Made by a program: the position numbers and the translations under genes. Under the pieces are notes generated by a model. That model was not told where the DNA came from and ran no database searches. It saw only the letters and a program-made list of their open reading frames with translations. A stretch of DNA of 63,378 nucleotides, counting the filler, from Octopus bimaculoides (lineage: Eukaryota), in the NCBI RefSeq assembly GCF_001194135.2. It is 4 parts of 4 records of this genome, joined end to end, with 100 filler letters (N's around TTAATTAATTAA, not from the genome) between each part and the next. Parts side by side here need not be neighbours in the genome. Positions count along the whole stretch, not along the records: positions 45,350 to 62,124 come from NC_068991.1; 3 more parts are not named here. The stretch is one strand, 5' to 3'. The stretch's first letter is position 1, and every line of letters begins with the position of its first letter. Shown here in pieces: positions 46,534 to 62,124 of the stretch.

Positions 46534-47304
46534 ATATATATATATATATATATATNNNNNNNNNNNNNNNNNNNNNNNNNNNNNNNNNNNNNNNNNNNNN
46601 NNNNNNNNNNNNNNNNNNNNNNNNNNNNNNNNNNNNNNNNNNNNNNNNNNNNNNNNNNNNNNNNNNNNNNNNNNNNNNNNNNNNNNNNNNNNNNNNNNNN
46701 NNNNNNNNNNNNNNNNNNNNNNNNNNNNNNNNNNNNNNNNNNNNNNNNNNNNNNNNNNNNNNNNNNNNNNNNNNNNNNNNNNNNNNNNNNNNNNNNNNNN
46801 NNNNNNNNNNNNNNNNNNNNNNNNNNNNNNNNNNNNNNNNNNNNNNNNNNNNNNNNNNNNNNNNNNNNNNNNNNNNNNNNNNNNNNNNNNNNNNNNNNNN
46901 NNNNNNNNNNNNNNNNNNNNNNNNNNNNNNNNNNNNNNNNNNNNNNNNNNNNNNNNNNNNNNNNNNNNNNNNNNNNNNNNNNNNNNNNNNNNNNNNNNNN
47001 NNNNNNNNNNNNNNNNNNNNNNNNNNNNNNNNNNNNNNNNNNNNNNNNNNNNNNNNNNNNNNNNNNNNNNNNNNNNNNNNNNNNNNNNNNNNNNNNNNNN
47101 NNNNNNNNNNNNNNNNNNNNNNNNNNNNNNNNNNNNNNNNNNNNNNNNNNNNNNAAATTCCTCATTATTGATAAATGTTTTAACGGCAAAAGCACATTAT
47201 ACACCATTCCATACCGCAAAGGGGACTATTAAAAACATCCCGTTACGCAGCTCGAAAACACTATCATATTATGCCTATCTTTACTCACGTCACATTCATA
47301 GTCA

Positions 47305-47645
47305 CGTGGTGGCGGTGCAATGGCTCAGTGGTTAAGGCGTCGTGAGTGTTTATTGAGCGAAAACACCTAAAAGCTGCACGAGGCTCCGGCAGGGGGGTTA
47401 GGTGGCGAACCCTGTTGTACTCTTTCACTACAACTTTCTCTTGCTCTTTCTTCCTGTTTCTGTTGTACCTGTATTTCAAAGGGTCAGCCTTGTCACCCTC
47501 CGTGTCACGCTGAATCTCCCCGAGAACTACGTTAAGGGATCGCGTGTCTGTGGACTGCTCAGTCACTTGCACGTTAATATCACGAGCAGGCTTCCGTTGA
47601 TTGGATCAACTGGAATCCTCGTCGTCGTAGGCGACGGAGTACCAT
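47305..47645 (+). mobile_element. SINE family C copy with internal head deletion
   Basis: caatggctcagtggttaaggcgt is joined directly to cgtgagtgtttattgagcgaaaacacc. The B-box segment seen in the 39110 copy is missing. Confidence 0.8.
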
Positions 47646-47749: not shown

Positions 47750-48012
47750 AATGATACTTATAAACCAACAAGTACAATAAGCGTACAGAACGACAGACAG
47801 ACAATTTTTCAAGGAGAAAGTACAAAGGTTTCTGTAAATATCACTTTCCCGGAGGCAACAACAATCCCTGTGTTAGAAATTGAGTCGTTCGCGGTGGAGG
47901 CAAATGGAAAGTACCTGTTTTCTCTTTGCAAAGCAGAGATTGCGTGGGTCGGAAGAAATATACAATGTCTGAATTTAACGAGGACCCAGGAACTGATGGA
48001 ATTCGTACCGAA
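47750..48012 (+). CDS. Uncharacterised tandem-repeat extracellular protein, exon a (repeat 1, first half)
   Basis: tttatttgtag| ... |gtaact, phase 0 to 2. NDTYKPTSTISVQNDRQTIFQGESTKVSVNITFPEATTIPVLEIESFAVEANGKYLFSLCKAEIAWVGRNIQCLNLTRTQELMEFVP(K). Not in the ORF track because it has no ATG start. Confidence 0.85.
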
Positions 48013-48197
48013 GTAACTACTTATTTTCGATCGTCTTCGTTTTCATTGTCACCATCGTCATCGTCATCGTCGTCACCATCATCATCATCATCACCATCAC
48101 CATCATCACCATCACCATCACCATCACCATCGCCACCACCACCATCAACATCATCATCATCATCATCATAATCATCATCATCATTATCATCTTCTTT

Positions 48198-48565
48198 CAG
48201 GCCAGCACCTATGAACAATCACCAAAGATCTCTGGTTTAACAGTGCTATCGAAAAGCATTCCCTGTTCAGGATAAGCTCTACAGGCACGGTTCGAGACAC
48301 ACCGGACCGACTTGCCTGAGATGCGGCCAGAGCGACGAAACCGTTCTGCACGCACTCGTGCAGTGTCCAACCATTTCGGACCTGTGGGCTTATGCCGAAC
48401 GGCTGCTGTCGCGCGTGGGACGAGTCCGCCTTTCGGCCGAGTCTATCGGGAAAATTGCCCCACCACCTTCTTTCAAAGAGTAAGGCAAGACAGTCGTCAT
48501 CGTACTGGTGGCCATGGTGAAAGAATGTGTGTGGTGGACTCGAGCGAAAGGATTAGAAACAAACA
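48198..48565 (+). mobile_element. Tx1/L1-clade LINE ORF2 fragment with CCHC zinc knuckle
   Basis: ...QCYRKAFPVQDKLYRHGSRHTGPTCLRCGQSDETVLHALVQCPTISDLWAYAERLLSRVGRV... contains the C-x2-C-x4-ET-x2-H-x4-C motif that follows RT in L1/Tx1 elements. One in-frame stop. Confidence 0.85.
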
Positions 48566-49112
48566 NNNNNNNNNNNNNNNNNNNNNNNNNNNNNNNNNNN
48601 NNNNNNNNNNNNNNNNNNNNNNNNNNNNNNNNNNNNNNNNNNNNNNNNNNNNNNNNNNNNNNNNNNNNNNNNNNNNNNNNNNNNNNNNNNNNNNNNNNNN
48701 NNNNNNNNNNNNNNNNNNNNNNNNNNNNNNNNNNNNNNNNNNNNNNNNNNNNNNNNNNNNNNNNNNNNNNNNNNNNNNNNNNNNNNNNNNNNNNNNNNNN
48801 NNNNNNNNNNNNNNNNNNNNNNNNNNNNNNNNNNNNNNNNNNNNNNNNNNNNNNNNNNNNNNNNNNNNNNNNNNNNNNNNNNNNNNNNNNNNNNNNNNNN
48901 NNNNNNNNNNNNNNNNNNNNNNNNNNNNNNNNNNNNNNNNNNNNNNNNNNNNNNNNNNNNNNNNNNNNNNNNNNNNNNNNNNNNNNNNNNNNNNNNNNNN
49001 NNNNNNNNNNNNNNNNNNNNNNNNNNNNNNNNNNNNNNNNNNNNNNNNNNNNNNNNNNNNNNNNNNNNNNNNNNNNNNNNNNNNNNNNNNNNNNNNNNNN
49101 NNNNNNNNNNNN

Positions 49113-49158
<46 letters not shown>

Positions 49159-49201
49159 TACATGCATACACATTTATGCATGATGTTTTCTATCCACACA
49201 G

Positions 49202-49436
49202 GCCGGAATCAGTTGACTTTGATTACAAAGTGAAAGTACCCCTTCAAAATATATGCTTGACGGATGTATTCACGGAACCATATGACAACACAATAACTAT
49301 AGATATAACATACAGGCTTGAAGCAGCAATTCCGAATAACAAAACATGGATCACGGCAGGTTTGACTTTGAATACTAAATTGTGGGTCGGCCAAGTTGCA
49401 ATGCAGGAGAAAACTGGTATCGCAGATGTCATACTT
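49202..49436 (+). CDS. Repeat protein exon b
   Basis: cacacag|, phase 2 start. PESVDFDYKVKVPLQNICLTDVFTEPYDNTITIDITYRLEAAIPNNKTWITAGLTLNTKLWVGQVAMQEKTGIADVIL. Phase-0 donor taken at |gtaaat; an alternative lies 9 nt earlier. Confidence 0.82.
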
Positions 49437-50748
49437 GTAAATACAAATTCTCATTTTAACTTCCCTTTTCTTTCTTATTTTTTCATTGGTTTAAATTCTT
49501 CTGGTTATCTTTCGTTTATGTATGTAAAATTGTGAACAACAAAGTAATAGCAGAAGGGAATTTAAATTATTTCACAGAAAAGCAGTCTTAATTTAGTTGA
49601 GATCAACGATGTAAAGCTATATATATGAACACAATATGACATGGCGTTTCACCCAGATATTTTATCGTGAATAGATTATCAAACACCTTTTCTCAAGTTA
49701 ACCTTTGCGTTTCCTCTGCATCACTCATGATACTCAAGACATATTTCCCTGGCGTCCATGCATCATATAAAATAAATATTCTCAATCGTTTTCAGACGCC
49801 AGAGTAATTTTGGACTTACCTGACAGCATTATAAGACAAGGGCTAAATAAAGGTCTGAAAACAAACATGGACGCTTAGGACACATTTATGAAAATGCTTG
49901 GAGCAGGCAAAGGCTTAAGATAGTCTCGGTGGTGTCATTGGTTTTCCTCTGAAATGTTTTGATAGTTTTAATCCTATATTTATTATTAATTCTACTTCTC
50001 CGAAGGCAGCGTGCTGGCAGAATCGTTAAAGCATCGAAAAAGTGCTTTTTCGGTATTTCTTCCGGCGGCTCTTTACATTATGTTTTCAAATTCGAGGTCA
50101 AATTTAACTTTCATTGATGAAATAGAATCTGGAGATCGACAAGCATATCTCATCACGGGGCGTCTTCATATATGTACACAAAAAGAAAAGTGTTAATCGC
50201 ATGTACACTCAATCTCAGATCTTTGTCGCACCACTTGCAAATGCAACAACAACAACACACGCCTCACAAGCACTTCCTCTCTACAAACTACTTGCAGCAC
50301 ATACGTCTACTCGCACACACTTTCGCAGTCACTCAGTTAACCATTACACATGACGTCTGCTCACGCAGACACACAGACGACCTCACCTATATACATACAT
50401 AGTCATCGACGCACCATTTATGCAAGCACACACACACATCAGATCACAGACACACGCAACGCACACATATGAAACATTTTCTATTGCACATACAAACATG
50501 CACACATAGGCAAGCACATACAATGCAACTCAGTTTTAATTTGTACACACGAAGCAAAAAATGATCACGCACACGCACGCATACATTGAGAAAGACAATG
50601 CACATGTATTTGAATTATACACACGCGTAAATAACAAACGTCAGTTCACATGGAAATTGCAAAACAATAACGCCAACATCACTGCATATAACAATTCTTA
50701 CATGTACACATATCAACGTACACACACACACGCACACACACACAGACA

Positions 50749-50795
<47 letters not shown>

Positions 50796-51099
50796 ACTTG
50801 CTAACATTGCTTCAAACACACACGTATTCAAATAATATGAACATAAGAGACCGAAAGAATAAGTACAAAGCTTACAAAAATAAGTCCTGGAGTCGATTTG
50901 CTCGACTAAAGGTGGCCGCAGTCAAATGACTGAAACAAGTAAAAGAGTAAAAGAGTATACATTCAAATATGCATCTACACAACATACATAAATGCATTCG
51001 CCACTCCACACACATACGATCATATACACCTAATGAATGTCATATTTACTCGTCATATGAGTTATTATATGTTTCATTTTGTGCTACTTTAATTTCTAG

Positions 51100-51385
51100 A
51101 ACGGACCTCAACGTGTTGACATCATTGATGTCAAACAGCTGACTTCTTTACCAATCTCTTATATACAAGGCTATAACATCAACATTAAGATTCCGCCCTT
51201 GACTGCGGCAAAAGTAGTGGTGAAAGTCTCAAGCGATTCATCTGCTCTTTCTGTCTGCTCAGTACGACTAGTAGCCAAAGGATCGAATATCGGATGCCTG
51301 AGGAATGAAACCACAGAAGTTCAAGAGATGAATTCCATTCTCAAGAAATCTATTCAACTAGATTTTGGACCCATTACGAATCTAG
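51100..51385 (+). CDS. Repeat protein exon c (repeat 2, first half)
   Basis: tttaatttctag| ... |gtagat, phase 0 to 1. NGPQRVDIIDVKQLTSLPISYIQGYNINIKIPPLTAAKVVVKVSSDSSALSVCSVRLVAKGSNIGCLRNETTEVQEMNSILKKSIQLDFGPITNL(G). Confidence 0.87.
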
Positions 51386-51666
51386 GTAGATTTATTGTTG
51401 TGTTTCTTACTATCGAACTTATTGAACATAGCTCTCTCTTTTTCATGTATGTATGTATGTATGTATGTTTGCATTATGTATGTATGTGTGTAGTATGAAT
51501 GCATGGAATGTTTCTATGTATGTACGTACGTATGTATGCATGTACGTACCTACGTATGCGTGCATGTATGTATGTATGTATGTATGTATGTATGTATGCA
51601 CCAATCTACTTATATTTATTTATATATATACATTTACAAGTGTATGTACATCATTATCTCACTATA

Positions 51667-51733
<67 letters not shown>

Positions 51734-51824
51734 TTTCTCTAATATATATATACACACACACGAATATATATATGTGTGTGTGTATATACATATATGAATG
51801 CAGATATATATATATATATATATG

Positions 51825-51907
<83 letters not shown>

Positions 51908-52599
51908 ATGTGTGTGTTTGTATGTGGGTATGTATGTATGTCCTTAGGCATTGCACCATCTCTCCAGATTAGTCAGCAATACCTGTGCAGAGTCTTAGGG
52001 CCAATAAGGCTTGCACGACAACTCACAGACCATCTCCACTCTGTTGAGATTATCCAAAGACAAGATGTCTGGTACCAATATGAGTTGCAAGCTCAGGGAT
52101 GTGGGAACACCATGATATCAAGCATTGTCCAGTGCCATTCCCTGTATATCTGGTTTTACATCAGAGTAGCCTTCTCCAAGAGACACGCTTCAACAAGAGC
52201 TAAGGGCCGCCCCACTTCCAGGGGCTCTTCCAGCATGCCAGACACCATCCCGGAATTTCTGCTTGCTCGTGCTCTTGTTAGATAGTCATTGAACCTGCAC
52301 TACGTTTATCAGTCTTTTTAACAAGTCTCTTTTAGTCCTGGTGGGTTTCTAGCAACCCTCCTCTCCAGGCTATCCTGGTGGCGTGTAAAGGTTTAGTCGC
52401 CGATGACCTGACTATGCAACAAGTTGTACAGGCTTCCATGTTACCAGTAGCACTTATGAGAGCCTTATAGGTGACCTGACATAATATATGTATATGCACA
52501 GATACACGTTCACAATAGGATATGGCATGGACTGAATACTTAAGAGCTTCGCTTCACAATAATGAGATCCAGGTTCGATCCTACGTCATGAAATCTTAT

Positions 52600-53990
52600 A
52601 CAAATGCCATTTTCTGGGGCTTGTTTTCGTTTTAGGTAGAGACCGTGTATGTCACTGTTTATGTGGAAATTATGTGTGCTTGCAAGTATATTCCGTATTT
52701 TCATATCAATGGCTCGGATCTCATCAAGCGTCCCATCAGGCAGCCCAAATGTTGATATGGGTACTGTCACTGCGCACACATTGTAGGTCACTGTTTTATT
52801 GAATGCAGAGAGTTCTGAGGTCCAAAGTTTTTTATTCGGCTGTAATATTCTTTAGTGTAATATTCTTTTGTTACAGGTGCCATTGTAAGATATATTTTTA
52901 TCCATCCCGAGATACCTGTAGCATTCCTCGTCAGATACAAGGGAAACAATCAAATCATTGATGGAGATGTTACTAGTCTAGTTTATAGTTTTCCTCTTTT
53001 TCACAACAATGTAACATTTATCCTGACCAAACTCCAACCCTACATTCTTTCAGAATGTTGTAACTAGGTCAAGGCTCTTTTTCATCTCATGCATATTCTT
53101 TGCATAAAGTTTCAAGTCATCCACAAAGAAACAGTGTGTAATTTTGGTATTTCTTGTTTCCTTGTGAACCAGTGCGATATCCTTCAGACTTCCTTAACAT
53201 TAATTACAAGGGGTTTACAGGAAGTATAAACAGCATCACAGAGAGGCTGTCCCCTTTGAATATGCCTTTCAGATACTCTATTCTATCGGTGATAATACAG
53301 TCACTCTTTGTATTTAATTTCAAGATGGTGGTCCAAGATGAAGTCAGGTCAGCTATGGCTTTGACTGTTCTCACTGGAACTTTAGCAAGTTGAAGGGCTT
53401 CAAGCATCCATGAGTGGGGAACAGAGTCAAAGACTTTCTTGTAGTCTATCCACATTGAAACTAGGTTCCTCCTATGCCCTCGTACTTTGACATCACAGTT
53501 TTGTTAATTAAAGATTGCTCGGCACATCCCCAGATTCCCTTCTTTCCAGCTGCTTGTTCTGCTGTGATGCTGTTATTGGTTTCACAATGGTCCTGGAGGA
53601 AGAGATTCAAGCATACTGTATATATCTTATACATTAAGTTCTGGCATGCAGTTGGTCGGTAGCTTTCTGCCATGTGGGTGGTTCTGCATTTAGGGATCAA
53701 CTTTGTCTCTGCCAGAGCCAACCAGTGTAGTATGCTACTGTTCCCAATGAGAGCTTGCTGGTACAGATTGAGAAGATATGGTTGGTAGAATGTTAGCTTC
53801 TTGTACCAATATCCAACAATCAAGTCTCTTCCAGGTGCTTTTCCATCCTGGAGTTTCTGGATCACAGATGCAAGACTTCCACCATCAATGCTGTATGTCT
53901 TGAATGTAACGCTGGAGCAATAACCTTTTCGGATTTCTTTCAGCCACAGAGCATCTTAGTTAAATTCCTTCTCTTCACTACAGATTCCCC
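52600..53990 (-). mobile_element. R4/Dong-clade LINE reverse transcriptase, degraded
   Basis: KAPGRD, YRPTAC.NLMYK, EQAAGKKG..GC.EQ.LIN, WIDYKKVFDSVPHSW, KGIFKGDSLS, HCFFVDDLKLYAK (53116-53127) and GLEFGQDKC. Several frameshifts and stops. Confidence 0.92.
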
Positions 53991-54052
53991 TCCAGAAGCA
54001 GTCTATGTATGTATGTAATATATATATATTTATATGTATGTATGAATTTCAG

Positions 54053-54231
54053 GGGTCCATGGAATCCATCAGAGTACTTTCTTTGATAAAAGCTCTGTAC
54101 TACTACAAGCGTTGGTCACTTTTCAAGCTGCTTCGTCAGGTACTTTGACATTAAGTGTTACACTGGGCAGTCAGACTCCCATTGACACCACATTCCCATT
54201 AACAGCAACTTCAAATGCAAGCGTCAATTAT
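54053..54231 (+). CDS. Repeat protein exon d
   Basis: gaatttcag| ... |gtaagt, phase 1 to 0. (G)VHGIHQSTFFDKSSVLLQALVTFQAASSGTLTLSVTLGSQTPIDTTFPLTATSNASVNY. Confidence 0.82.
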
Positions 54232-55235
54232 GTAAGTTTTTTATCTTCTTTTTACAGTCGACGAAAAAATCTCGTTTTAATTAATTTTATAATTATTTTA
54301 AGTATTTTTGTAAAAACTGATAGTGGATTTTAAGGCCTCCATAGCTCAGCATTGACTGACAGAGGTCCATGTATCTCCACATCAGCAATGGTTCCACGGT
54401 ATCTTTTACATACCACCCTAAGCTGATTTCTTCTGCTTCGATACAATCTTGGCAACTGATCAAACCTCTCCCACCCTTTCTTCCAGGAAACTACAGCCTA
54501 ACGGTGTCACTCTTAGCGGGGAAGTCTCCGTGCGCTGTCAACATTTCATCTGAGACAGAATCTATCAATTACGCTATTTCTGTGGAGGCTTCCAGAGTAT
54601 GTTACGATCTGGCAATGGAACGGATTAACTTTATGGTTCAGTGAAATATTCCAAATGCTGGCATCTGCGCTGGTACGTTAAATGAGTGATGGGATGCTAT
54701 ATTTAAAAGGAAAAATCCAGTAGCAATATTTCTTAAAATCTTATATCACTTGATTAGTCTGTCGTTGTTGTCGAGACACTGTATTATTCTTTCTCTACAA
54801 AGCCTATTCATTTGAAGTATTCACTATTAGAAATGATGAGGTAGAGCGAGGCGATTGGTATGAGTGGCTTCCGCGTAAAAAGTGATTTCTTCCAAATTCA
54901 AGCATAAACATTTACTTTGGTCGCATTCCATCCCTGTGCAAGTTGAAAACTTTATTATTACTGGATCTGTTAGGTTGCGAGCTGGCAGCATTGTTAGCAC
55001 GCCGGGCAAAGTGCTTAGCGGCATTTCGTCCGTCTTTACGTTCTGAGTTCAAATGCTGCCGAGGTCGACTTTGCCTTTCATCCTTTCGGGGTCGGTAAAT
55101 TAAGTACCAGTGAGACACTGGGATCGTTGTAATCATAATTCCCCTCCCCTCAAATTTTAGGTTTTGTGCCTTTAGTAGAAAAGATTATTACTGTATCTTT
55201 GTGTATGAATTCGGATTTCTTTATTTATTGAACAG

Positions 55236-55489
55236 ACTAACGTAGTGAAAAATGTAGTGAACTTTGTGGCACCCATTGCAAACAGAACCAGTACAAATGT
55301 GAACAAAGGGGAAGCGAAAAGAGTGGTCATACAGTTTTATGTCACCCCAGAAACATTCCAAAGCATGAAATTCCAAACGAGAGTCAACAACATTGGAATG
55401 GTTGAAATTTGTGACTACAATATAATTCATTCTGGTACCAACATACCGTGTTTGGACAAGAAACTAATTACAGGAAAAAATATTTCAAA
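55236..55489 (+). CDS. Repeat protein exon e (repeat 3, first half)
   Basis: tttattgaacag| ... |gtaagt, phase 0 to 2. TNVVKNVVNFVAPIANRTSTNVNKGEAKRVVIQFYVTPETFQSMKFQTRVNNIGMVEICDYNIIHSGTNIPCLDKKLITGKNIS(K). Confidence 0.88.
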
Positions 55490-55829
55490 GTAAGTCTTTT
55501 TTCTTATCACAAGGATGACGTGCGCACGCACACATCCATTTCAAATTGAGGCTCCAGGTAAGAGATCGAGTTTAGTTTTTCAAGAAATAAAAAAATTATT
55601 ATTATATTCGTGTGCGTGGTGTGTATGAATGTATAACACCATCATCATCATCATCATCGTTTTTATATCTATTTTGCCATGCTTGCAAGCGTCAGATAGA
55701 ATTCACTGAAGCAGATTTCCTAAGGCCAGAATATACTTCCTGTTGCCAACCCTCGCCTGTTCCTGAATAAGATAATGTTTCTCTATGGGCAGACATGCTT
55801 TCTCAAAAGATTGGAAACGAAGGAAACTG

Positions 55830-55887
<58 letters not shown>

Positions 55888-56012
55888 CACACTAAATTAC
55901 CTGCTGCTGTATACCTTTTACCAAGGAATATACCCACTGAAGTAATTACCAGAAGTGCCTTTGGATATATCTGTCCCTTAGAGGCTTTAAAAACATCTAA
56001 CTTATACCTATA

Positions 56013-56094
<82 letters not shown>

Positions 56095-57206
56095 GGTAAT
56101 GCTAGCGCCAAGCAGTGTTTAGGCATAAGAAAAGTTTAGGTGTGTTCAAATATGTTTGTGGCGTATTTCAAGTGCTAAACGGCAAATTCACTGCAGTGAC
56201 AGTGGAGAAAAATTCCCAGACGTCGCTGTTTCTAGTTCTTCAGCCGTCCTGAGAATCCTGATAGGGGGCGACGCTGGACAAGTTTGATCCTATTAAATGG
56301 CACAGTAAGTTTGTATCTCCTGGCAAAGCCTCGAATGGCTCAAAGCGTTTTGAGTATTAGTATTTTAGCATTTGAGTGGAAGCTCGATAAAGGGATTATT
56401 TCTGCTTTTCGGTCCTTAACGTAGTTCTTCGTTCGGTTTATAATAACCCCGTGGAGTCCACTCTGATGCAATCACACAGATCACAGACCAAGGACCAGGT
56501 CTTAGAATAACTTCCTCCTTTCCTGCCAATTATTGTAAAGGTTCTAAAAAGATTCTAGGCGCTGCTCCTCTTCCTATCACAAATCCTTACAAAAAAAAAA
56601 GAAACAAAAAACAAAAAACGTAGAATGAGTGACAACATTCAATTAAAATTTATAGCCTAACAAGGCAGTAAGTAAATTGCAACGGAGGCCACCGATCTGC
56701 TTGCATATCCTGTCATGAACCAGCACCATATTTCCAACACCATCTTTGTTTCTGTCCACTCGTTATTTCAGCCCCTTGCGTGGTTATCTTCCTCTCTCAA
56801 TTTAATGAGGAATCGCTGTCTGCCCGTCGCTGCATTCACCAGAGGTTTGACATGTTGCCGTTATTTATTTACCGCAGATCAGTTTTGCATCAGTAGATAT
56901 ATAAATGAAAGTCATTTCGTTTATGTCTGCCCACTCCTGCGTTTTTTCTTCTTCTTCTTTTTAGACATAGTGTATCAATAACAAAACAGCGTCGAAATTT
57001 TTTGTCTGCTGTTTCTTGAAAGCTTTCTCAATCGCATAAAGGCACTCTTCACTAGAAGATACCGCTATGTAGTCGTGCTTTCTCGTATTATAAACAGACT
57101 TTTGCATTCTCCGACTTTGTCCTTGATTGGAGTCTCCAAAGAACCTTCCATATTGAAAACAACTTCCATACCGTTTTTTTCTTTCCTTTCTGTTTCAAAA
57201 TTTCAG

Positions 57207-57276
57207 GGAAGAATGGATGATTGAAGCGAATATTTGTTCGTGGCCAATCGATGAGGAAGATCCGGAAAGTAACAAG
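57207..57276 (+). CDS. Repeat protein exon f (short)
   Basis: Strong polypyrimidine acceptor ...aaatttcag|, donor aag|gtgtgt, 70 nt, phase 2 to 0. EEWMIEANICSWPIDEEDPESNK parallels the LQNIC...PYDNT segment of exon b and bridges the phases of exons e and g. Confidence 0.68.
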
Positions 57277-57374
57277 GTGTGTTCAAAGTAATTCTAAATA
57301 GACAGCATTTAATATTACTGTAATTACAAATTTGTATTATTCTAGGTTTACAACAAAATCGATTGACAACATTG

Positions 57375-57592
57375 CATTATGGAACTGAGTCTTGAACTCT
57401 ACCAAAAGTACATCAATCAGCTTGATGCTTTTCATATGCGATGCTTGCATACTACCTCCAACATAAACCGAGTGACCATATTCATAACATTGAGGTACCA
57501 GCAAAATGCATTCAACCCATCCTCATCAGAATACAGCTTGGATGGTCAGGTTATCTCTCACCTATGAATGATATCAGAATCCATCAAATATA
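57375..57592 (+). mobile_element. RTE (BovB-like) LINE post-RT fragment
   Basis: YG.ESW.LYQKYINQLDAFHMRCLH.I..I...DHI.NIEV..KC..IQPILIRIQLGWSGYLSPMND.RI matches the RTE C-terminal E-T/S-W...LxxFHxRCLRxI...W-x-GH pattern. Confidence 0.75.
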
Positions 57593-58789
57593 TATATATA
57601 TATATANNNNNNNNNNNNNNNNNNNNNNNNNNNNNNNNNNNNNNNNNNNNNNNNNNNNNNNNNNNNNNNNNNNNNNNNNNNNNNNNNNNNNNNNNNNNNN
57701 NNNNNNNNNNNNNNNNNNNNNNNNNNNNNNNNNNNNNNNNNNNNNNNNNNNNNNNNNNNNNNNNNNNNNNNNNNNNNNNNNNNNNNNNNNNNNNNNNNNN
57801 NNNNNNNNNNNNNNNNNNNNNNNNNNNNNNNNNNNNNNNNNNNNNNNNNNNNNNNNNNNNNNNNNNNNNNNNNNNNNNNNNNNNNNNNNNNNNNNNNNNN
57901 NNNNNNNNNNNNNNNNNNNNNNNNNNNNNNNNNNNNNNNNNNNNNNNNNNNNNNNNNNNNNNNNNNNNNNNNNNNNNNNNNNNNNNNNNNNNNNNNNNNN
58001 NNNNNNNNNNNNNNNNNNNNNNNNNNNNNNNNNNNNNNNNNNNNNNNNNNNNNNNNNNNNNNNNNNNNNNNNNNNNNNNNNNNNNNGGGCATCCAGCTGT
58101 AGAAACTCTGCCAAATCAGACTGGAGCCTGGCGTTGCCATCCGGTTTCACCAGTCCTCAGTCAAATCGTCCAACCCATGCTAGCATGGAAAGCGGACGTT
58201 AAACGACGATGATAAACTGCTTTTAACATTTTCTTATTATCAAAGAATGTATAACTGTATTTTAATAAGCAATGTTAAATCTCTGAACGAGGTGTTAACA
58301 GTAACTGCACGATAAAGTGAAGTATATTTGCCATTTAAATGTGGCTGACCCCTAAGGGTGGATGTTACTGTTGCTTTTAGCCCCAGGAGAACATCTCCTC
58401 CAGCTGGCTTATCGACACATATCTGTGTCCTGTCTATTTTTGCCAAGGGAAGTTATCCTTCCCATCTTGATCTGCGATACGTACGGACCCGAGTTTCAGG
58501 GTTATTTCCCTTCTTCAGCGTACGATAATCGCCGACCTTTGATGAGAATGACAATCCCTTGGCAATATATAAGTCTTTTAATACTTTTGCGATAAATAGT
58601 ACTTAACACAACAAAGCTCATNNNNNNNNNNNNNNNNNNNNNNNNNNNNNNNNNNNNNNNNNNNNNNNNNNNNNNNNNNNNNNNNNNNNNNNNNNNNNNN
58701 NNNNNNNNNNNNNNNNNNNNNNNNNNNNNNNNNNNNNNNNNNNNNNNNNNNNNNNNNNNNNNNNNNNNNNTATATGTATATATATGTAT

Positions 58790-58980
58790 ATTTGACCGTT
58801 GACTGAACACTATTCAATTTTTTTTCTCCGTGTTTTTCTCCTTGTCTCCGTATTCTTTCTGTTGAAGAGCGTAGCTCGAAACGTCAAAGACTTTCCGTAT
58901 TCCCGAGCGTCATACTAATATATACTTTTGTTATTTACACCACCTGTCCTCGTCTGTTGTTATTATTTGTATATTCTCCC
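58790..58980 (+). mobile_element. Penelope-like 3' terminal fragment (similar ends at about 19770-19850 and 23330-23550)
   Basis: ctgttgaagagcgtagctcgaaacgtc; compare cctgaagaagggg...cccccgaaatggcc and ctctgatgaagggatatg...ggaaacagctg. These resemble the ctgaaga/ctgatga...cgaaac motif of PLE termini. Confidence 0.45.
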
Positions 58981-59064
58981 ATATATATATATATATATGT
59001 ATGTGTGTGATACATATATGATATATGTGTGTTTATATGTCTGTGTATTCTCTATTTTCCAAAG

Positions 59065-59226
59065 GTTCAAGTAGAAGCTATCGTCAAAGTACCCAAGAAT
59101 AGCGCCATCTCATTAAACGACGTGATTAATGTTACTACTGATATTTACATCAACGATTCTCTGGTGGAGACGACACAATTGGCGCTAACTGTCGTCGATG
59201 CATTTACAGAAGACTTCCTGGATTGG
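59065..59226 (+). CDS. Repeat protein exon g
   Basis: tattttccaaag| ... |gttcgt, phase 0 to 0. VQVEAIVKVPKNSAISLNDVINVTTDIYINDSLVETTQLALTVVDAFTEDFLDW. Confidence 0.78.
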
Positions 59227-60354
59227 GTTCGTAAAGTTCCATTATATGTGACAAATCGTTGCGTGGTTTTCACTTTATTGTCAATGTGTGTGTCATGGCA
59301 AGACATATTTTATACTGAGCTCTATGATTTGGCTTTTTCTTCTATATCCGAATTCTGAATTTGAACGTAGAAGATATCTGTCCATCCATGTCAGATATCT
59401 ATCTATCCATGTTATATATATATATATATATNNNNNNNNNNNNNNNNNNNNNNNNNNNNNNNNNNNNNNNNNNNNNNNNNNNNNNNNNNNNNNNNNNNNN
59501 NNNNNNNNNNNNNNNNNNNNNNNNNNNNNNNNNNNNNNNNNNNNNNNNNNNNNNNNNNNNNNNNNNNNNNNNNNNNNNNNNNNNNNNNNNNNNNNNNNNN
59601 NNNNNNNNNNNNNNNNNNNNNNNNNNNNNNNNNNNNNNNNNNNNNNNNNNNNNNNNNNNNNNNNNNNNNNNNNNNNNNNNNNNNNNNNNNNNNNNNNNNN
59701 NNNNNNNNNNNNNNNNNNNNNNNNNNNNNNNNNNNNNNNNNNNNNNNNNNNNNNNNNNNNNNNNNNNNNNNNNNNNNNNNNNNNNNNNNNNNNNNNNNNN
59801 NNNNNNNNNNNNNNNNNNNNNNNNNNNNNNNNNNNNNNNNNNNNNNNNNNNNNNNNNNNNNNNNNNNNNNNNNNNNNNNNNNNNNNNNNNNNNNNNNNNN
59901 NNNNNNNNNNNNNNNNNNNNNNNNNNNNNNNNNNNNNNNNNNNNNNNNNNNNNNNNNNNNNNNNNNNNNNNNNNNNNNNNNNNNNNNNNNNNNNNNNNNN
60001 NNNNNNNNNNNNNNNNNNNNNNNNNNNNNNNNNNNNNNNNNNNNNNNNNNNNNNNNNNNNNNNNNNNNNNNNNNNNNNNNNNNNNNNNNNNNNNNNNNNN
60101 NNNNNNNNNNNNNNNNNNNNNNNNNNNNNNNNNNNNNNNNNNNNNNNNNNNNNNNNNNNNNNNNNNNNNNNNNNNNNNNNNNNNNNNNNNNNNNNNNNNN
60201 NNNNNNNNNNNNNNNNNNNNNNNNNNNNNNNNNNNNNNNNNNNNNNNNNNNNNNNNNNNNNNNNNNNNNNNNNNNNNNNNNNNNNNNNNNNNNNNNNNNN
60301 NNNNNNNNNNNNNNNNNNNNNNNNNNNNNNNNNNNNNNNNNNNNNNNNNNNNNN

Positions 60355-60434
<80 letters not shown>

Positions 60435-60679
60435 ATCTTTCTGCGTTGAAAAAGGAGAGATAGAAAGAGATAGATAGATAGAGAGGGAGAGAGGGACAGC
60501 GAGTGCGTATTCTTTTATTTTTTTTCTTGTTTCAACTATAGGGCTATGGCCATGCTGGAGAACCGTCTTGAAGAGTTTATCTCTTTTGGGGACCACATCT
60601 CCCCCAATTACTTGTGTGTATGGTGAATTCTTTAATTTTTGTGCGATGTCTAACAGTTCAATTTTGTTTTACATTGTAG

Positions 60680-60986
60680 ATGACAAATGACAACACAACA
60701 AATCTTATAAGTGCTGCTGGAACACCAGTTACGAGCGCTGAAATTGGAGAAGTCTTTGATTTGAATATAAACTTATCCATTCCAGTTAATTCATCAAGCC
60801 TTGTTAAATTCAATGTTTCTGTACCAGTGACCGAAACTGCCCATTTGACCATACGAGATATTAAATACAACGGCTCAGACCAAGATATTGCTTGCATTGA
60901 CGGTGCTGAAGTTAATTTTGCCTCAACCAAAAATACCAGTCAAATTGATAAGGGCGAAATGGATTTTGGTATTGTCACTAATACAG
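60680..60986 (+). CDS. Repeat protein exon h (repeat 4, first half)
   Basis: ttttacattgtag| ... |gtagga, phase 0 to 1. MTNDNTTNLISAAGTPVTSAEIGEVFDLNINLSIPVNSSSLVKFNVSVPVTETAHLTIRDIKYNGSDQDIACIDGAEVNFASTKNTSQIDKGEMDFGIVTNT(G). The ATG directly follows a splice acceptor, so it is internal. Confidence 0.88.
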
Positions 60987-61104
60987 GTAGGAGGCTGTGT
61001 GGCAGATATTATTTTAATAACAAAGTTTCCTAAAACTACTACTGCTACTAATAATAATAATAATAACACATTTCATTATCCGGTTCTCGTTTTTATCTTC
61101 TTAG

Positions 61105-61348
61105 GTGTAACCCGCAGAATATTGCAACAAAAGGAACTATATTTCAGTACAATTCATGTTATTTTAACATTACAAATGGCAGATGCCAAGGAAAATACAG
61201 ATCAATCAGACAAGAGCATTATGATGGAACTTCGAGTTGGTAGTTTTATCGGTACTCTAGATCATATTGTGAAAGTCAATAGAAATGCTAATAATGCCCC
61301 GAAACTGTACTTTGAGGCCGGCTTTAACGATACGGGAAGACCTTTGTT
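61105..61348 (+). CDS. Repeat protein exon i
   Basis: ttttatcttcttag|, phase 1 start. (G)VTRRILQQKELYFSTIHVILTLQMADAKENTDQSDKSIMMELRVGSFIGTLDHIVKVNRNANNAPKLYFEAGFNDTGRPL. Donor taken at |gtacgt; an alternative |gtaagt lies near 61400. Confidence 0.8.
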
Positions 61349-61499
61349 GTACGTACAATATTTTGAATCTTTTTATAATTTTCATTTGCTGATCAAGTTT
61401 GTAAGTGTATGTGACAGTAAATGTATTTTGTCGATGGTATTTAAGGTCAAAATCGGCTCTGAGTGAGCAATCCTATTATAAAACTCTGTAGGACGTACT

Positions 61500-61720
61500 C
61501 CTTTGAGAATACCATATGCACCAATGATAACTGCATGGCATTTAGGATTATCCCTACCATTAACTGTAGAACTCGAAATGTAGTTTACAGCATAAGATGC
61601 ATAGAAGCCGCTTGTAAAAACATAGGGGAGACATCTAGGAGCATTGCGGAACGACTAAATAAACATTTGAGACAATATGACGACAAAAAAAAGTCTTTCG
61701 ACAAATACGGGAGTGCATCC
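61500..61720 (+). mobile_element. Penelope-like element GIY-YIG endonuclease remnant
   Basis: INCRTRNVVYSIRCIEAACKNIGETSRSIAERLNKHLR matches the N-V-I/V-Y...C..C...YIGET.R....R...H GIY-YIG motif of PLEs. Confidence 0.78.
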
Positions 61721-62124
61721 TCATAAATGAAACTTCCCCAATACTAAATAGGAAATATACTTAGTAGATATAATAACCCCATACCCACAGTTTACACAGG
61801 TAGAGTAGAATAGTTAGTGGGCTGTTATGTAGAAGGAGGTATGTATGTATGTGTGGGTGTATGTATGTATGTATGTATGTAAGTGTGGGTGTATGTATGT
61901 TTGTGTGGTGTATGTATGTGTGGGTGTATGTATGTATGTGTGGGTGTATATATGTATATATGTAAGTGTGGGTGTATGTATGCATGTGTGGATGTATGCA
62001 TGTATGTAAGCGGGTAAGACAAAATGAGAAATATACAGAATAAAGAATTGTGTACCGGTTTCGGCATTAACGTCTTACTTACGTAACAACATCCGTGTTC
62101 TCTTCAGCACAATCGTTCTAGAAT

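Follow-up and report, generated by a model that had tools for sequence, protein, structure and literature searches.

A repeat domain of an undescribed family in a predicted secreted glycoprotein of Octopus bimaculoides

Secreted adhesion proteins that combine EGF and discoidin domains include lactadherin/MFGE8 and EDIL3/Del-1. Sea-urchin nectin carries six discoidin domains. In classical cadherins, the pro-region is processed at a convertase site. Extracellular beta-sandwiches strung as a rod are found in integrin alpha legs and in MG domains.

We analyzed a window of 63,378 nucleotides from Octopus bimaculoides. A 16.8-kb piece of it carries nine exons on the + strand (Table 1). These exons are real and, judged from the sequence, they code for the middle third of a large, secreted and presumably glycosylated octopus protein. 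They belong to the octopod orthologue of Octopus vulgaris LOC115217410, of which they make up the central part, and code for repeats 4-7 of seven. The gene itself is not new, since public annotations of related species already include a prediction of it. In the repeat we see a genuine domain family that has no description so far and belongs to a familiar general kind.

The exons span positions 47750-61348, and their spliced length is 2000 nt (666 codons plus 2 nt). There is AG at every acceptor and GT at every donor, the phases are consistent, and no stop codon appears across the 666 spliced codons. The first-pass annotation had proposed nine GT-AG exons joined in frame into about 666 codons, with no stop in this portion. 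The re-derived coordinates and length agree with it, including start and end. The phase-0 exon boundaries are also the repeat boundaries. Exon 6 is needed to keep the frame between exons 5 and 7, which are out of frame without it.

Table 1. Exons of the locus (window positions) and their matches in O. vulgaris (protein residues; genome locus L001) and Argonauta hians.
Exon	Position	Strand	Length (nt)	Content	Motifs	Matches
1	47750-48012	+	263	Phase 0 entry, AG..GT; N-terminal two thirds of window repeat 1 (family repeat 4)	CKAEIAWVGRNIQC	O. vulgaris 529-616, 82% aa identity; L001 44252-44514, splice sites kept
2	49202-49436	+	235	C-terminal part of window repeat 1	VDFDYKV; W-I-T-A-G...W-V-G-Q	O. 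vulgaris 616-696, 83%, contiguous with exon 1; also A. hians
3	51100-51385	+	286	First part of window repeat 2 (family repeat 5)	CSVRLVAKGSNIGC; LDFGPITNLG	A. hians 53-148, 56%; L001 52867-53152, open, AG/GT-flanked
4	54053-54231	+	179	Second part of window repeat 2		A. hians 148-192; L001 57455-57636, open, AG/GT-flanked
5	55236-55489	+	254	First part of window repeat 3 (family repeat 6)	CDYNIIHSGTNIPC	O. vulgaris 706-779, 86%; splice sites kept in L001
6	57207-57276	+	70	Micro-exon, AG/GT	EEWMIEANICSWPIDEEDPESNK	O. vulgaris 779-803, 84%
7	59065-59226	+	162	End of window repeat 3		O. vulgaris 802-857, 84%, contiguous with exons 6 and 8
8	60680-60986	+	307	First part of window repeat 4 (family repeat 7)	Variant IRDIKYNGSDQDIAC, then MDFGIVTNTG	O. 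vulgaris 857-964, 81%; A. hians 54%
9	61105-61348	+	244	Rest of window repeat 4; ends phase 2 at GT		O. vulgaris, 80% over 86 aa, up to ...GRPL

Four assembly gaps interrupt the piece (48566-49112, 57607-58086, 58622-58770 and 59432-60354). All of them are intronic, and the exons on either side are in frame; exons 1 and 2, for example, join with 2+1 bases across the first gap, and exon 7 is contiguous with its neighbors across the other three. On the O. vulgaris protein, the flanking exons abut without loss at residues 616/616, 803/802 and 857/857. The 547-N gap has a counterpart of about 505 bp in O. vulgaris, whose locus is collinear with the one described here. A longer HSP of exon 9, with 73% identity, extends into the intron. 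The coding sequence goes on past this exon, and the next residues of the orthologue (FNHFLTV...) are absent from the 16.8-kb piece.

The piece also contains transposon fragments, one of them on the other strand, and many microsatellite-derived ORFs. Such content could suggest that chance or transposon-derived ORFs were wrongly chained into a gene. We give this explanation practically no credence and consider it already refuted, because the exons match the cephalopod orthologues and the relatives found with HMMER. The match runs exon by exon along orthologous proteins of two other cephalopods, and it extends to proteins from at least five phyla besides the cephalopods' own. In addition, the transposon fragments lie only in introns or downstream of the last exon.

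The O. vulgaris orthologue (CAI9729618.1) is annotated with 1476 aa and was found with HMMER at E=4e-260. Identity to it is 83% in amino acids over 606 codons. In seven exons, the protein identity to O. vulgaris is 81-86%; exons 3 and 4 are matched in A. hians instead. The splice sites are intact at eight orthologous O. vulgaris exons. The dN/dS value against O. vulgaris is 0.53 overall and lower than 1 in every repeat. It reaches 0.84 in repeat 4, a value resting on only 11 synonymous changes. By codon comparison, these values indicate a fast-evolving but constrained extracellular protein. As 0.53 is high for a structural protein, the constraint may be relaxed in octopods.

A decaying or non-functional copy (a pseudogene or an unexpressed relic), or an unused cassette of window repeat 2, would also account for a fairly high dN/dS. 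The annotated O. vulgaris protein skips exons 3-4, and the donor of exon 7 is weak (GTTCGT). We regard this reading as very unlikely. The frame stays free of stops and frameshifts for its 666 codons, whereas open frames in this AT-rich genome have a mean length of about 15 codons. The AG and GT sites are all intact, here and at the eight orthologous exons of O. vulgaris, which has GT at the same position as the weak donor. The cassette itself is open in the O. vulgaris genome (468 nt) and included in the Argonauta model, and the constraint on every repeat argues against decay. Exons 3+4 make up 465 nt and form an in-frame, phase 0-0 cassette. If they were an optional cassette, the length of the rod would change.

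Within the window protein there are four repeats of 166, 155, 162 and 183 aa, where four of about 150-160 aa had first been described. They are mutually homologous (R1~R2, E=4e-4; R2~R4, E=3e-6, in a small database). The exact motif C-x7-G-x-N-I-x-C occurs three times, at residues 60, 219 and 380, and window repeat 4 has the variant IRDIKYNGSDQDIAC without the first Cys, just as the first-pass annotation described. In family repeats 4-6, the first Cys of the 14-residue C-x7-G-x-N-x-x-C lies in a predicted strand, and the second Cys just past the G-x-N segment that follows this strand. A second conserved motif, L-D-[LF]-G-x-[VI]-T-N-x-G, falls in a predicted central strand. The protein has 18 N-x-S/T sequons. 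Shuffles that preserve the composition give 9.1 +/- 2.7, and 15 of 5000 reach the observed number. The 18 sequons agree with the earlier count of more than 15 and are about twice the chance expectation, and the glycosylation proposed with that count is a reasonable prediction.

The AlphaFold2 model of the 666 aa is all-beta, with four sandwiches (pLDDT 83.1, pTM 0.68). Modeled separately, window repeat 2 has ten strands (pLDDT 89.3, pTM 0.84). Each repeat is predicted to be a beta-sandwich of 9-10 strands (pLDDT 83-89). The earlier idea of stacked Ig-like folds is right only in a broad sense. The four all-beta sandwiches agree with it; the 9-10 strands do not fit the classical 7-strand Ig and come closest to sandwiches of the cohesin, integrin-leg or MG type. 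Foldseek neighbors are weak (TM 0.45-0.56) and tell us little about the function or about a ligand.

We compared the repeat with described families. Pfam gave zero families at E<=10 for a 700-aa draft of the window protein and no family common to more than one of 64 repeats, and a PDB sequence search gave no match to the repeat. For the immunoglobulin superfamily (I-set, V-set, C1/C2-set) there was no Pfam match in the window protein or in the 64 repeats. The two Cys lie 12 residues apart and around one turn rather than cross-sheet, and the predicted domain has 9-10 strands, so this family was rejected. The cadherin repeat had no Pfam match in the 700-aa draft; the single match in relatives is N-terminal and outside the array. 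Integrin alpha leg and alpha-2-macroglobulin MG domains had no Pfam match, and the full-length relatives have no propeller or thioester domains. FN3, PKD, HYR, Calx-beta, CUB and other common extracellular repeats had no Pfam match either. The first reading had recognized no named family. This holds for Pfam and PDB sequences, and the relatives are named only "uncharacterized", "hypothetical" or "F5/8 type C domain-containing". Their identifiers are not mentioned in papers, and we found no published study.

A full HMMER scan gave about 29 representative relatives at E<=1e-3, seven of them at E<=1e-30. They belong to molluscs, a nemertean, a brachiopod, hemichordates, echinoderms and a spider; an annelid fragment came up in a later profile search. 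Examples are S. purpuratus LOC584294, Ptychodera flava XP_070558199, Lingula LOC106179497 and Lineus LOC135491664. The family was not detected in vertebrates, insects or nematodes. Seven repeats are present in nearly all full-length members. Window repeats 1-4 best match family repeats 4, 5, 6 and 7 in 8/13, 11/13, 12/13 and 12/12 relatives, with the Cys columns of window and family repeats aligned in register. For each of repeats 2-6, between 10 and 14 of 15 relatives have the pattern C-x(6-9)-G-x-N-x-x-C; for repeat 7, one of them does. The first Cys of repeat 7 is missing from 14 of the 15 full-length relatives, and the window pattern is the same. On these alignments, the Cys motif is a position-specific feature conserved across phyla. 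The disulfide in repeats 2-6 is putative, assumed from this conservation and from the predicted strand positions.

The full-length relatives are all built alike and show, from the N-terminus on, a signal peptide, EGF, a cadherin domain, a furin site, seven repeats, a discoidin domain and a Cys-containing C-terminal domain. Their Pfam domains are EGF_Teneurin, Cadherin and F5_F8_type_C. An R-x-[KR]-R site lies 15-25 residues before repeat 1, and a linker of about 150 aa separates repeat 7 from the F5/8-type-C domain. The C-terminal domain (about 180 aa) has conserved Cys and Asp-box-like motifs. Against the PDB, the family profile matches only in the discoidin and cadherin parts. The signal peptide, EGF and cadherin domains, furin site and F5/8C domain are seen in orthologues only, outside the 16.8-kb piece. 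With an orthologue of 1476 aa, and relatives in other phyla of 1600-2000 aa, the window protein is part of a much longer one, as first proposed. The secreted nature without a transmembrane segment was also borne out. The 700-aa draft has no TM-like hydrophobic 19-mer, and complete orthologues have none besides their signal-peptide-like N-terminus and no membrane anchor.

Judged from its domain content, the whole protein is probably an extracellular rod, N-glycosylated and processed, with a discoidin domain displayed as its binding head. It would enter the secretory pathway and be heavily N-glycosylated. A furin-type convertase would cleave after the EGF-cadherin pro-region, in the way known from the prodomains of classical cadherins. 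This would leave seven sandwiches in an extended rod, in which repeats 2-6 have putative disulfides, and the distal discoidin domain may bind glycan, lipid or collagen. Rather than being enzymatic, the repeats would chiefly provide a glycosylated spacer and a surface for interactions. The likely role is that of an extracellular matrix, surface-coat or adhesion component. The first-pass annotation had listed matrix, mucus, egg coat and adhesion as possible roles.

The rapid evolution of the protein admits other roles. A soluble pattern-recognition or immune lectin-type molecule could use the discoidin domain for microbial or foreign glycans, and the fast-evolving repeats as variable surfaces. 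Immune and reproductive extracellular proteins typically have dN/dS values of this kind, the protein is secreted and unanchored, and one relative also matches a NedA-like galactose-binding model. This role is unlikely, as there is essentially one conserved copy per genome examined and all repeats are orthologous, position by position, across phyla, unlike expanded, diversifying immune families. A component of gamete recognition, egg coat or sperm surface would fit a large, secreted, repeat-built and predicted glycosylated protein with rapid evolution between close species. The named relatives are all marine invertebrates, except for spiders and two freshwater molluscs. We hold this role to be quite improbable. 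The protein is present in a spider, in freshwater snails and mussels, and in internally fertilising cephalopods, and its deep conservation of architecture is unusual for gamete-recognition proteins. Going back to the matrix or adhesion role, we see about even chances for the fuller reading, an undescribed extracellular domain in an ancient bilaterian matrix/adhesion component with exons 3-4 as an optional in-frame cassette. Such a protein would have escaped study because no model organism has it.

Compared with solved folds, the models point to generic similarity only (cohesin modules, integrin alpha legs and C3 MG domains). The best single-repeat neighbors are bacterial and archaeal cohesin modules (2vo8, 2xdh, 6kgf; E 3e-5 to 9e-4, TM 0.47-0.56), which are 9-strand beta-sandwiches of similar size. 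However, sequence identity is 13-16% and there is no Pfam Cohesin match. To our knowledge, animals have no dockerin partner. The resemblance appears to be one of general fold, not evidence of homology. Integrin alpha legs (thigh, calf-1, calf-2) and C3/alpha-2-macroglobulin MG domains are also neighbors (Foldseek E 4e-4 to 3e-3, TM about 0.5). They share no sequence similarity with the repeats, and the beta-propeller, the thioester and any other hallmark domain are missing. Unlike them, the repeats are all homologous members of one family and form a fixed array of seven.

As in classical cadherins, the relatives have a cadherin-fold N-terminal region, then an R-x-K/R-R convertase site with predicted cleavage, then the mature part. 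However, this part does not consist of cadherin repeats and has no transmembrane or catenin-binding region. Like lactadherin/MFGE8 and EDIL3/Del-1, the protein is secreted and unanchored, with an EGF module and F5/8-type-C as the putative ligand-binding end. The family profile matches lactadherin, neuropilin and the C domains of factors V/VIII, with E down to 1e-33. The portion in the window has no domain in common with lactadherin, EDIL3 or nectin. In contrast to these three, the protein has a single discoidin domain, which follows a rod of seven novel sandwiches (about 1100 aa), and its EGF is paired with a cadherin domain ahead of the furin site. The annotated O. vulgaris model lacks family repeat 5 (window exons 3-4), and apparently also repeat 3, although the genome sequence of O. 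vulgaris, like the window, keeps family repeat 5 intact. In exon boundaries, repeat order and position-specific Cys pattern, LOC115217410 and the other relatives are the same as the window protein.

The piece from NC_068991.1 (45350-62124) measures 16,775 bases, 2,698 of them N across five runs. Of the joined stretch, the analysis drew on this piece alone. Its GC content is 38%, as in an AT-rich animal genome, and microsatellites are plentiful, mostly adjoining the gaps. The plus-strand stop-to-stop frames comprise the four motif-bearing frames of the first-pass annotation and several further, shorter frames. Most of the exons follow directly from the splice sites. The first chain was off at two points: the phase at the intron 4 open frame and the frame of exons 5 and 7. 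Both failures were resolved by the match to the Octopus vulgaris orthologue (P0001). In this protein, EEWKIEANICSWPVNEEDPESNK sits between the residues of exons 5 and 7, which gives a 70-nt exon (exon 6), and there is no room for an exon from the intron 4 frame. The final nine-exon model has 2000 nt (666 codons plus 2 nt), is stop-free, and carries AG and GT at all boundaries. The first-pass annotation had proposed a nine-exon GT-AG chain of about 666 codons. The match is exact, so that chain was right and the added exon wrong. The product consists of four units of 166, 155, 162, and 183 amino acids, each beginning at a phase-0 exon boundary.

Features of the piece (positions on the joined stretch; L001 is the O. 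vulgaris genomic locus)
Feature	Position (strand)	Observation	Reading
Exon 1	47750-48012 (+)		
Exon 2	49202-49436 (+)		
Exon 3	51100-51385 (+)	L001 52867-53152, 286 nt	
Exon 4	54053-54231 (+)	L001 57455-57636, 182 nt	
Exon 5	55236-55489 (+)		
Exon 6	57207-57276 (+)		
Exon 7	59065-59226 (+)		
Exon 8	60680-60986 (+)		
Exon 9	61105-61348 (+)		
Intron 4 open frame	54360-54641 (+)	94 codons, beta-strand-like (GNYSLTVSLLAGKSPCAVNISSE...), usable AG/GT, no cephalopod protein counterpart	Possibly an exon that has decayed or is lineage-specific
Extra exon in this frame (GNYSLTVSLLAGKSPC...)	54487-54596	Frame broken; no counterpart in Argonauta or O. vulgaris proteins	Rejected
Same, alternative acceptor	54423-54596	No counterpart in Argonauta or O. 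vulgaris proteins	Rejected
Alternative exon 7 donor (GTAAAG)	59230	Stronger; breaks the frame, conflicts with the orthologue	Rejected
Intron 1 open frame	48241-48480 (+)	Pfam zf-RVT, E=6.6e-7	C-terminal zinc-binding part of a non-LTR retrotransposon reverse transcriptase
Two adjacent intron 3 open frames	53204-53865 (-)	53204-53455 resembles RVT_1 weakly (E=0.004, misses Pfam's cutoff); 53461-53865 has no Pfam match	Probably a degraded retrotransposon fragment
Open frame shortly 3' of exon 9	61463-61723 (+)	GIY-YIG catalytic domain, E=1e-4	Fits a Penelope-like element fragment
Intronic segments	54977-55189, 50842-50963, 47336-47640	Several other sites of the O. vulgaris locus alike, 76-88% identity	Dispersed short repeats, SINE-like
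(TCATCA)n trinucleotide-type array right after exon 1	48049-48191	Long Ser-, His- or Ile-rich frames on both strands	Could be mistaken for coding sequence
Exon 8-9 intron	60987-61104	118 bp, against 3.8 kb in O. vulgaris (L001 65666-69468)	Probably an O. vulgaris insertion, or a deletion or collapse in this assembly
Intron 1 length difference	48194-48208	About 4.7 kb only in O. vulgaris (L001 44708-49447)	Probably as for the exon 8-9 intron

The extra exon was rejected because the cephalopod proteins have about 36 residues across exons 4 and 5, leaving no room. Since exons 5 and 7 are mutually out of frame, an exon resembling exon 2 was first suspected to be lost in a gap (57607-58086 or 58622-58770). 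The 70-nt exon revealed by the orthologue rules this out. A six-frame search of the piece with a profile of the four repeats found no further repeat-like exons up- or downstream. Neither Rfam nor tRNA scanning gave a match in the piece.

Compared with O. vulgaris, eight exons are 88-93% identical at the nucleotide level, with no alignment gaps, and retain AG and GT in that species. Exon 4 has 81% identity and 3 gap columns. Over 606 codons, dS was 0.165 and dN 0.087 (dN/dS = 0.53); by repeat, from 1 to 4, dN/dS was 0.45, 0.59, 0.38, and 0.84. The alignment, splice-site, and dN/dS data mean that this is constrained coding sequence, although fast-evolving. A set of chance open frames is excluded, and a pseudogene is unlikely. 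The nine exons form a conserved, intact, spliced coding region.

All four gaps within the nine-exon span fall in introns, and the O. vulgaris protein runs on directly from one flanking exon to the next (residues 616-616, 803-802, and 857-857). The O. vulgaris locus (OX597824.1:1137080-1231994) is collinear with the piece, its introns are about 80-90% alike, and its counterpart of the 547-N gap is about 505 bp long. Comparison with this protein and locus gave no sign of a missing exon or a misjoin at the gaps. We read the gap flanks at 46556, 48566, 57607, 58622, and 59432. At the edges, or within about 25 bases of them, there is a (TA)n-type microsatellite that translates as YIYIYI, in some cases together with (CA)n (e.g., 49113-49155 and 60355-60412). 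The gaps are probably unresolved microsatellites rather than lost unique sequence.

The full HMMER scan covered 1.84 billion representatives. Its best match was CAI9729618.1, the O. vulgaris orthologue ("uncharacterized protein LOC115217410", 1476 aa, E=4e-260). Relatives occur in cephalopods (Octopus, Argonauta), gastropods (Haliotis, Patella, Nucella, Lymnaea, Elysia, Aplysia), bivalves (Sinanodonta, Dreissena, Pecten), a nemertean (Lineus), a brachiopod (Lingula), hemichordates (Ptychodera, Glandiceps), and echinoderms (Strongylocentrotus, Apostichopus). The family repeat is also present in a partial model of the spider Stegodyphus and a fragment of the annelid Paralvinella. A word-indexed protein search was less complete and missed relatives found by the full scan: the draft protein gave no matches, and the repeat profile only six short fragments, one from Paralvinella.

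Named relatives are all labelled uncharacterized, hypothetical, or "F5/8 type C domain-containing". Pfam searches with the exons, the draft protein, and 64 repeats gave nothing consistent for the repeat, and no family was hit by two or more of the 64. Searching PDB sequences with either the protein or the repeat profile gave no match to the repeat, and the family profile reached discoidin and cadherin structures only. A literature search on the LOC/XP identifiers and on limpet mucus/discoidin found nothing relevant. The first-pass annotation recognized no named family, and this holds: the relatives are unnamed, and no Pfam model or PDB sequence fits the repeat. The protein is a member of a widespread, unnamed family.

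An HMM iterated from the four repeats of the piece finds exactly seven in nearly every full-length member. Repeats 1-4 align with, and best hit, family repeats 4, 5, 6, and 7. Given the fixed number and the position-matched best hits, the array is ancient and position-specific, not a recent expansion. In full-length relatives, the only Pfam matches are EGF_Teneurin and Cadherin, both N-terminal, and F5_F8_type_C close to the C-terminus. N-terminally complete models have a signal-peptide-like start and an R-x-[KR]-R site 15-25 residues ahead of repeat 1, with no internal hydrophobic segment.

Exons 3 and 4 (family repeat 5) are absent from the annotated CAI9729618.1 but included in the model from Argonauta hians. 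The O. vulgaris genome carries both, intact (468 nt in total), open, and AG/GT-flanked. The missing repeat is either an annotation miss or an optional in-frame cassette. CAI9729618.1 also seems to lack family repeat 3, carried by another Argonauta model (P0014). An annotation gap or alternative splicing likely explains the repeats lacking in this protein.

The four repeats are weakly but significantly similar to each other. The motif C-x7-G-x-N-I-x-C occurs at product residues 60, 219, and 380, and the fourth unit is a variant without the first Cys, as the first reading had described. Across phyla, family repeats 2-6 carry the Cys pair and repeat 7 lacks the first Cys. Because the phyla share this pattern, the variant is a conserved family trait. 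The product has 18 N-x-S/T sequons (9.1 ± 2.7 expected), in line with the "more than 15" reported before.

AlphaFold2 predicted an all-beta structure for the 666-aa product (23-row family alignment, pLDDT 83.1, pTM 0.68), and ten strands for repeat 2 (64-row repeat alignment, pLDDT 89.3, pTM 0.84). With Foldseek, the four-domain model matched multi-domain Ig-like rods: PrgB, mastigoneme, integrin alpha, antigen I/II, and alpha-2-macroglobulins. The best single-domain matches were cohesin modules, TTHA1873, the CLIPPER adhesin domain, C3/CVF MG domains, and integrin legs (TM 0.45-0.56, identity 7-16%). Of the Ig-like fold first proposed, the beta-sandwich repeats stand, but for the repeat, outside Pfam coverage, the prediction goes no further than a sandwich of the larger type with 9-10 strands. 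The repeat may yet be distantly related to a named domain.

Judged by its domain content and relatives, the protein would be secreted, processed by a convertase, and N-glycosylated, forming a rod in which the discoidin domain would supply ligand binding. Roles as an immune lectin or in gamete recognition are compatible and would fit the fast evolution. However, both fit more poorly with single-copy, position-specific conservation across phyla. We infer a component of extracellular matrix, a coat, or adhesion.

Public annotations already contain a prediction of this gene, so the locus itself is not novel. The novelty lies in recognizing that the repeat forms a domain family of its own and that the seven-repeat architecture is conserved. 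Our search of Pfam, the PDB, and the literature found no paper or curated model for either. If confirmed, the repeat would define a new extracellular domain family, about 150 aa in length, in which a putative disulfide and a strand motif are both conserved. It would belong to a single-copy protein whose seven-repeat architecture persists across Mollusca, Nemertea, Brachiopoda, Hemichordata, and Echinodermata. A Pfam/InterPro entry would name dozens of "uncharacterized" gene models and expose mistakes in annotation, among them the two repeats absent from the O. vulgaris model. Molecular knowledge of invertebrate extracellular matrix, mucus, and surface coats is scant, and the protein is a candidate conserved part of them. 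By itself, it opens no long-standing question. It represents a well-supported orphan family, not a new type of system: the product is a tandem extracellular beta-sandwich repeat protein, a kind already known.
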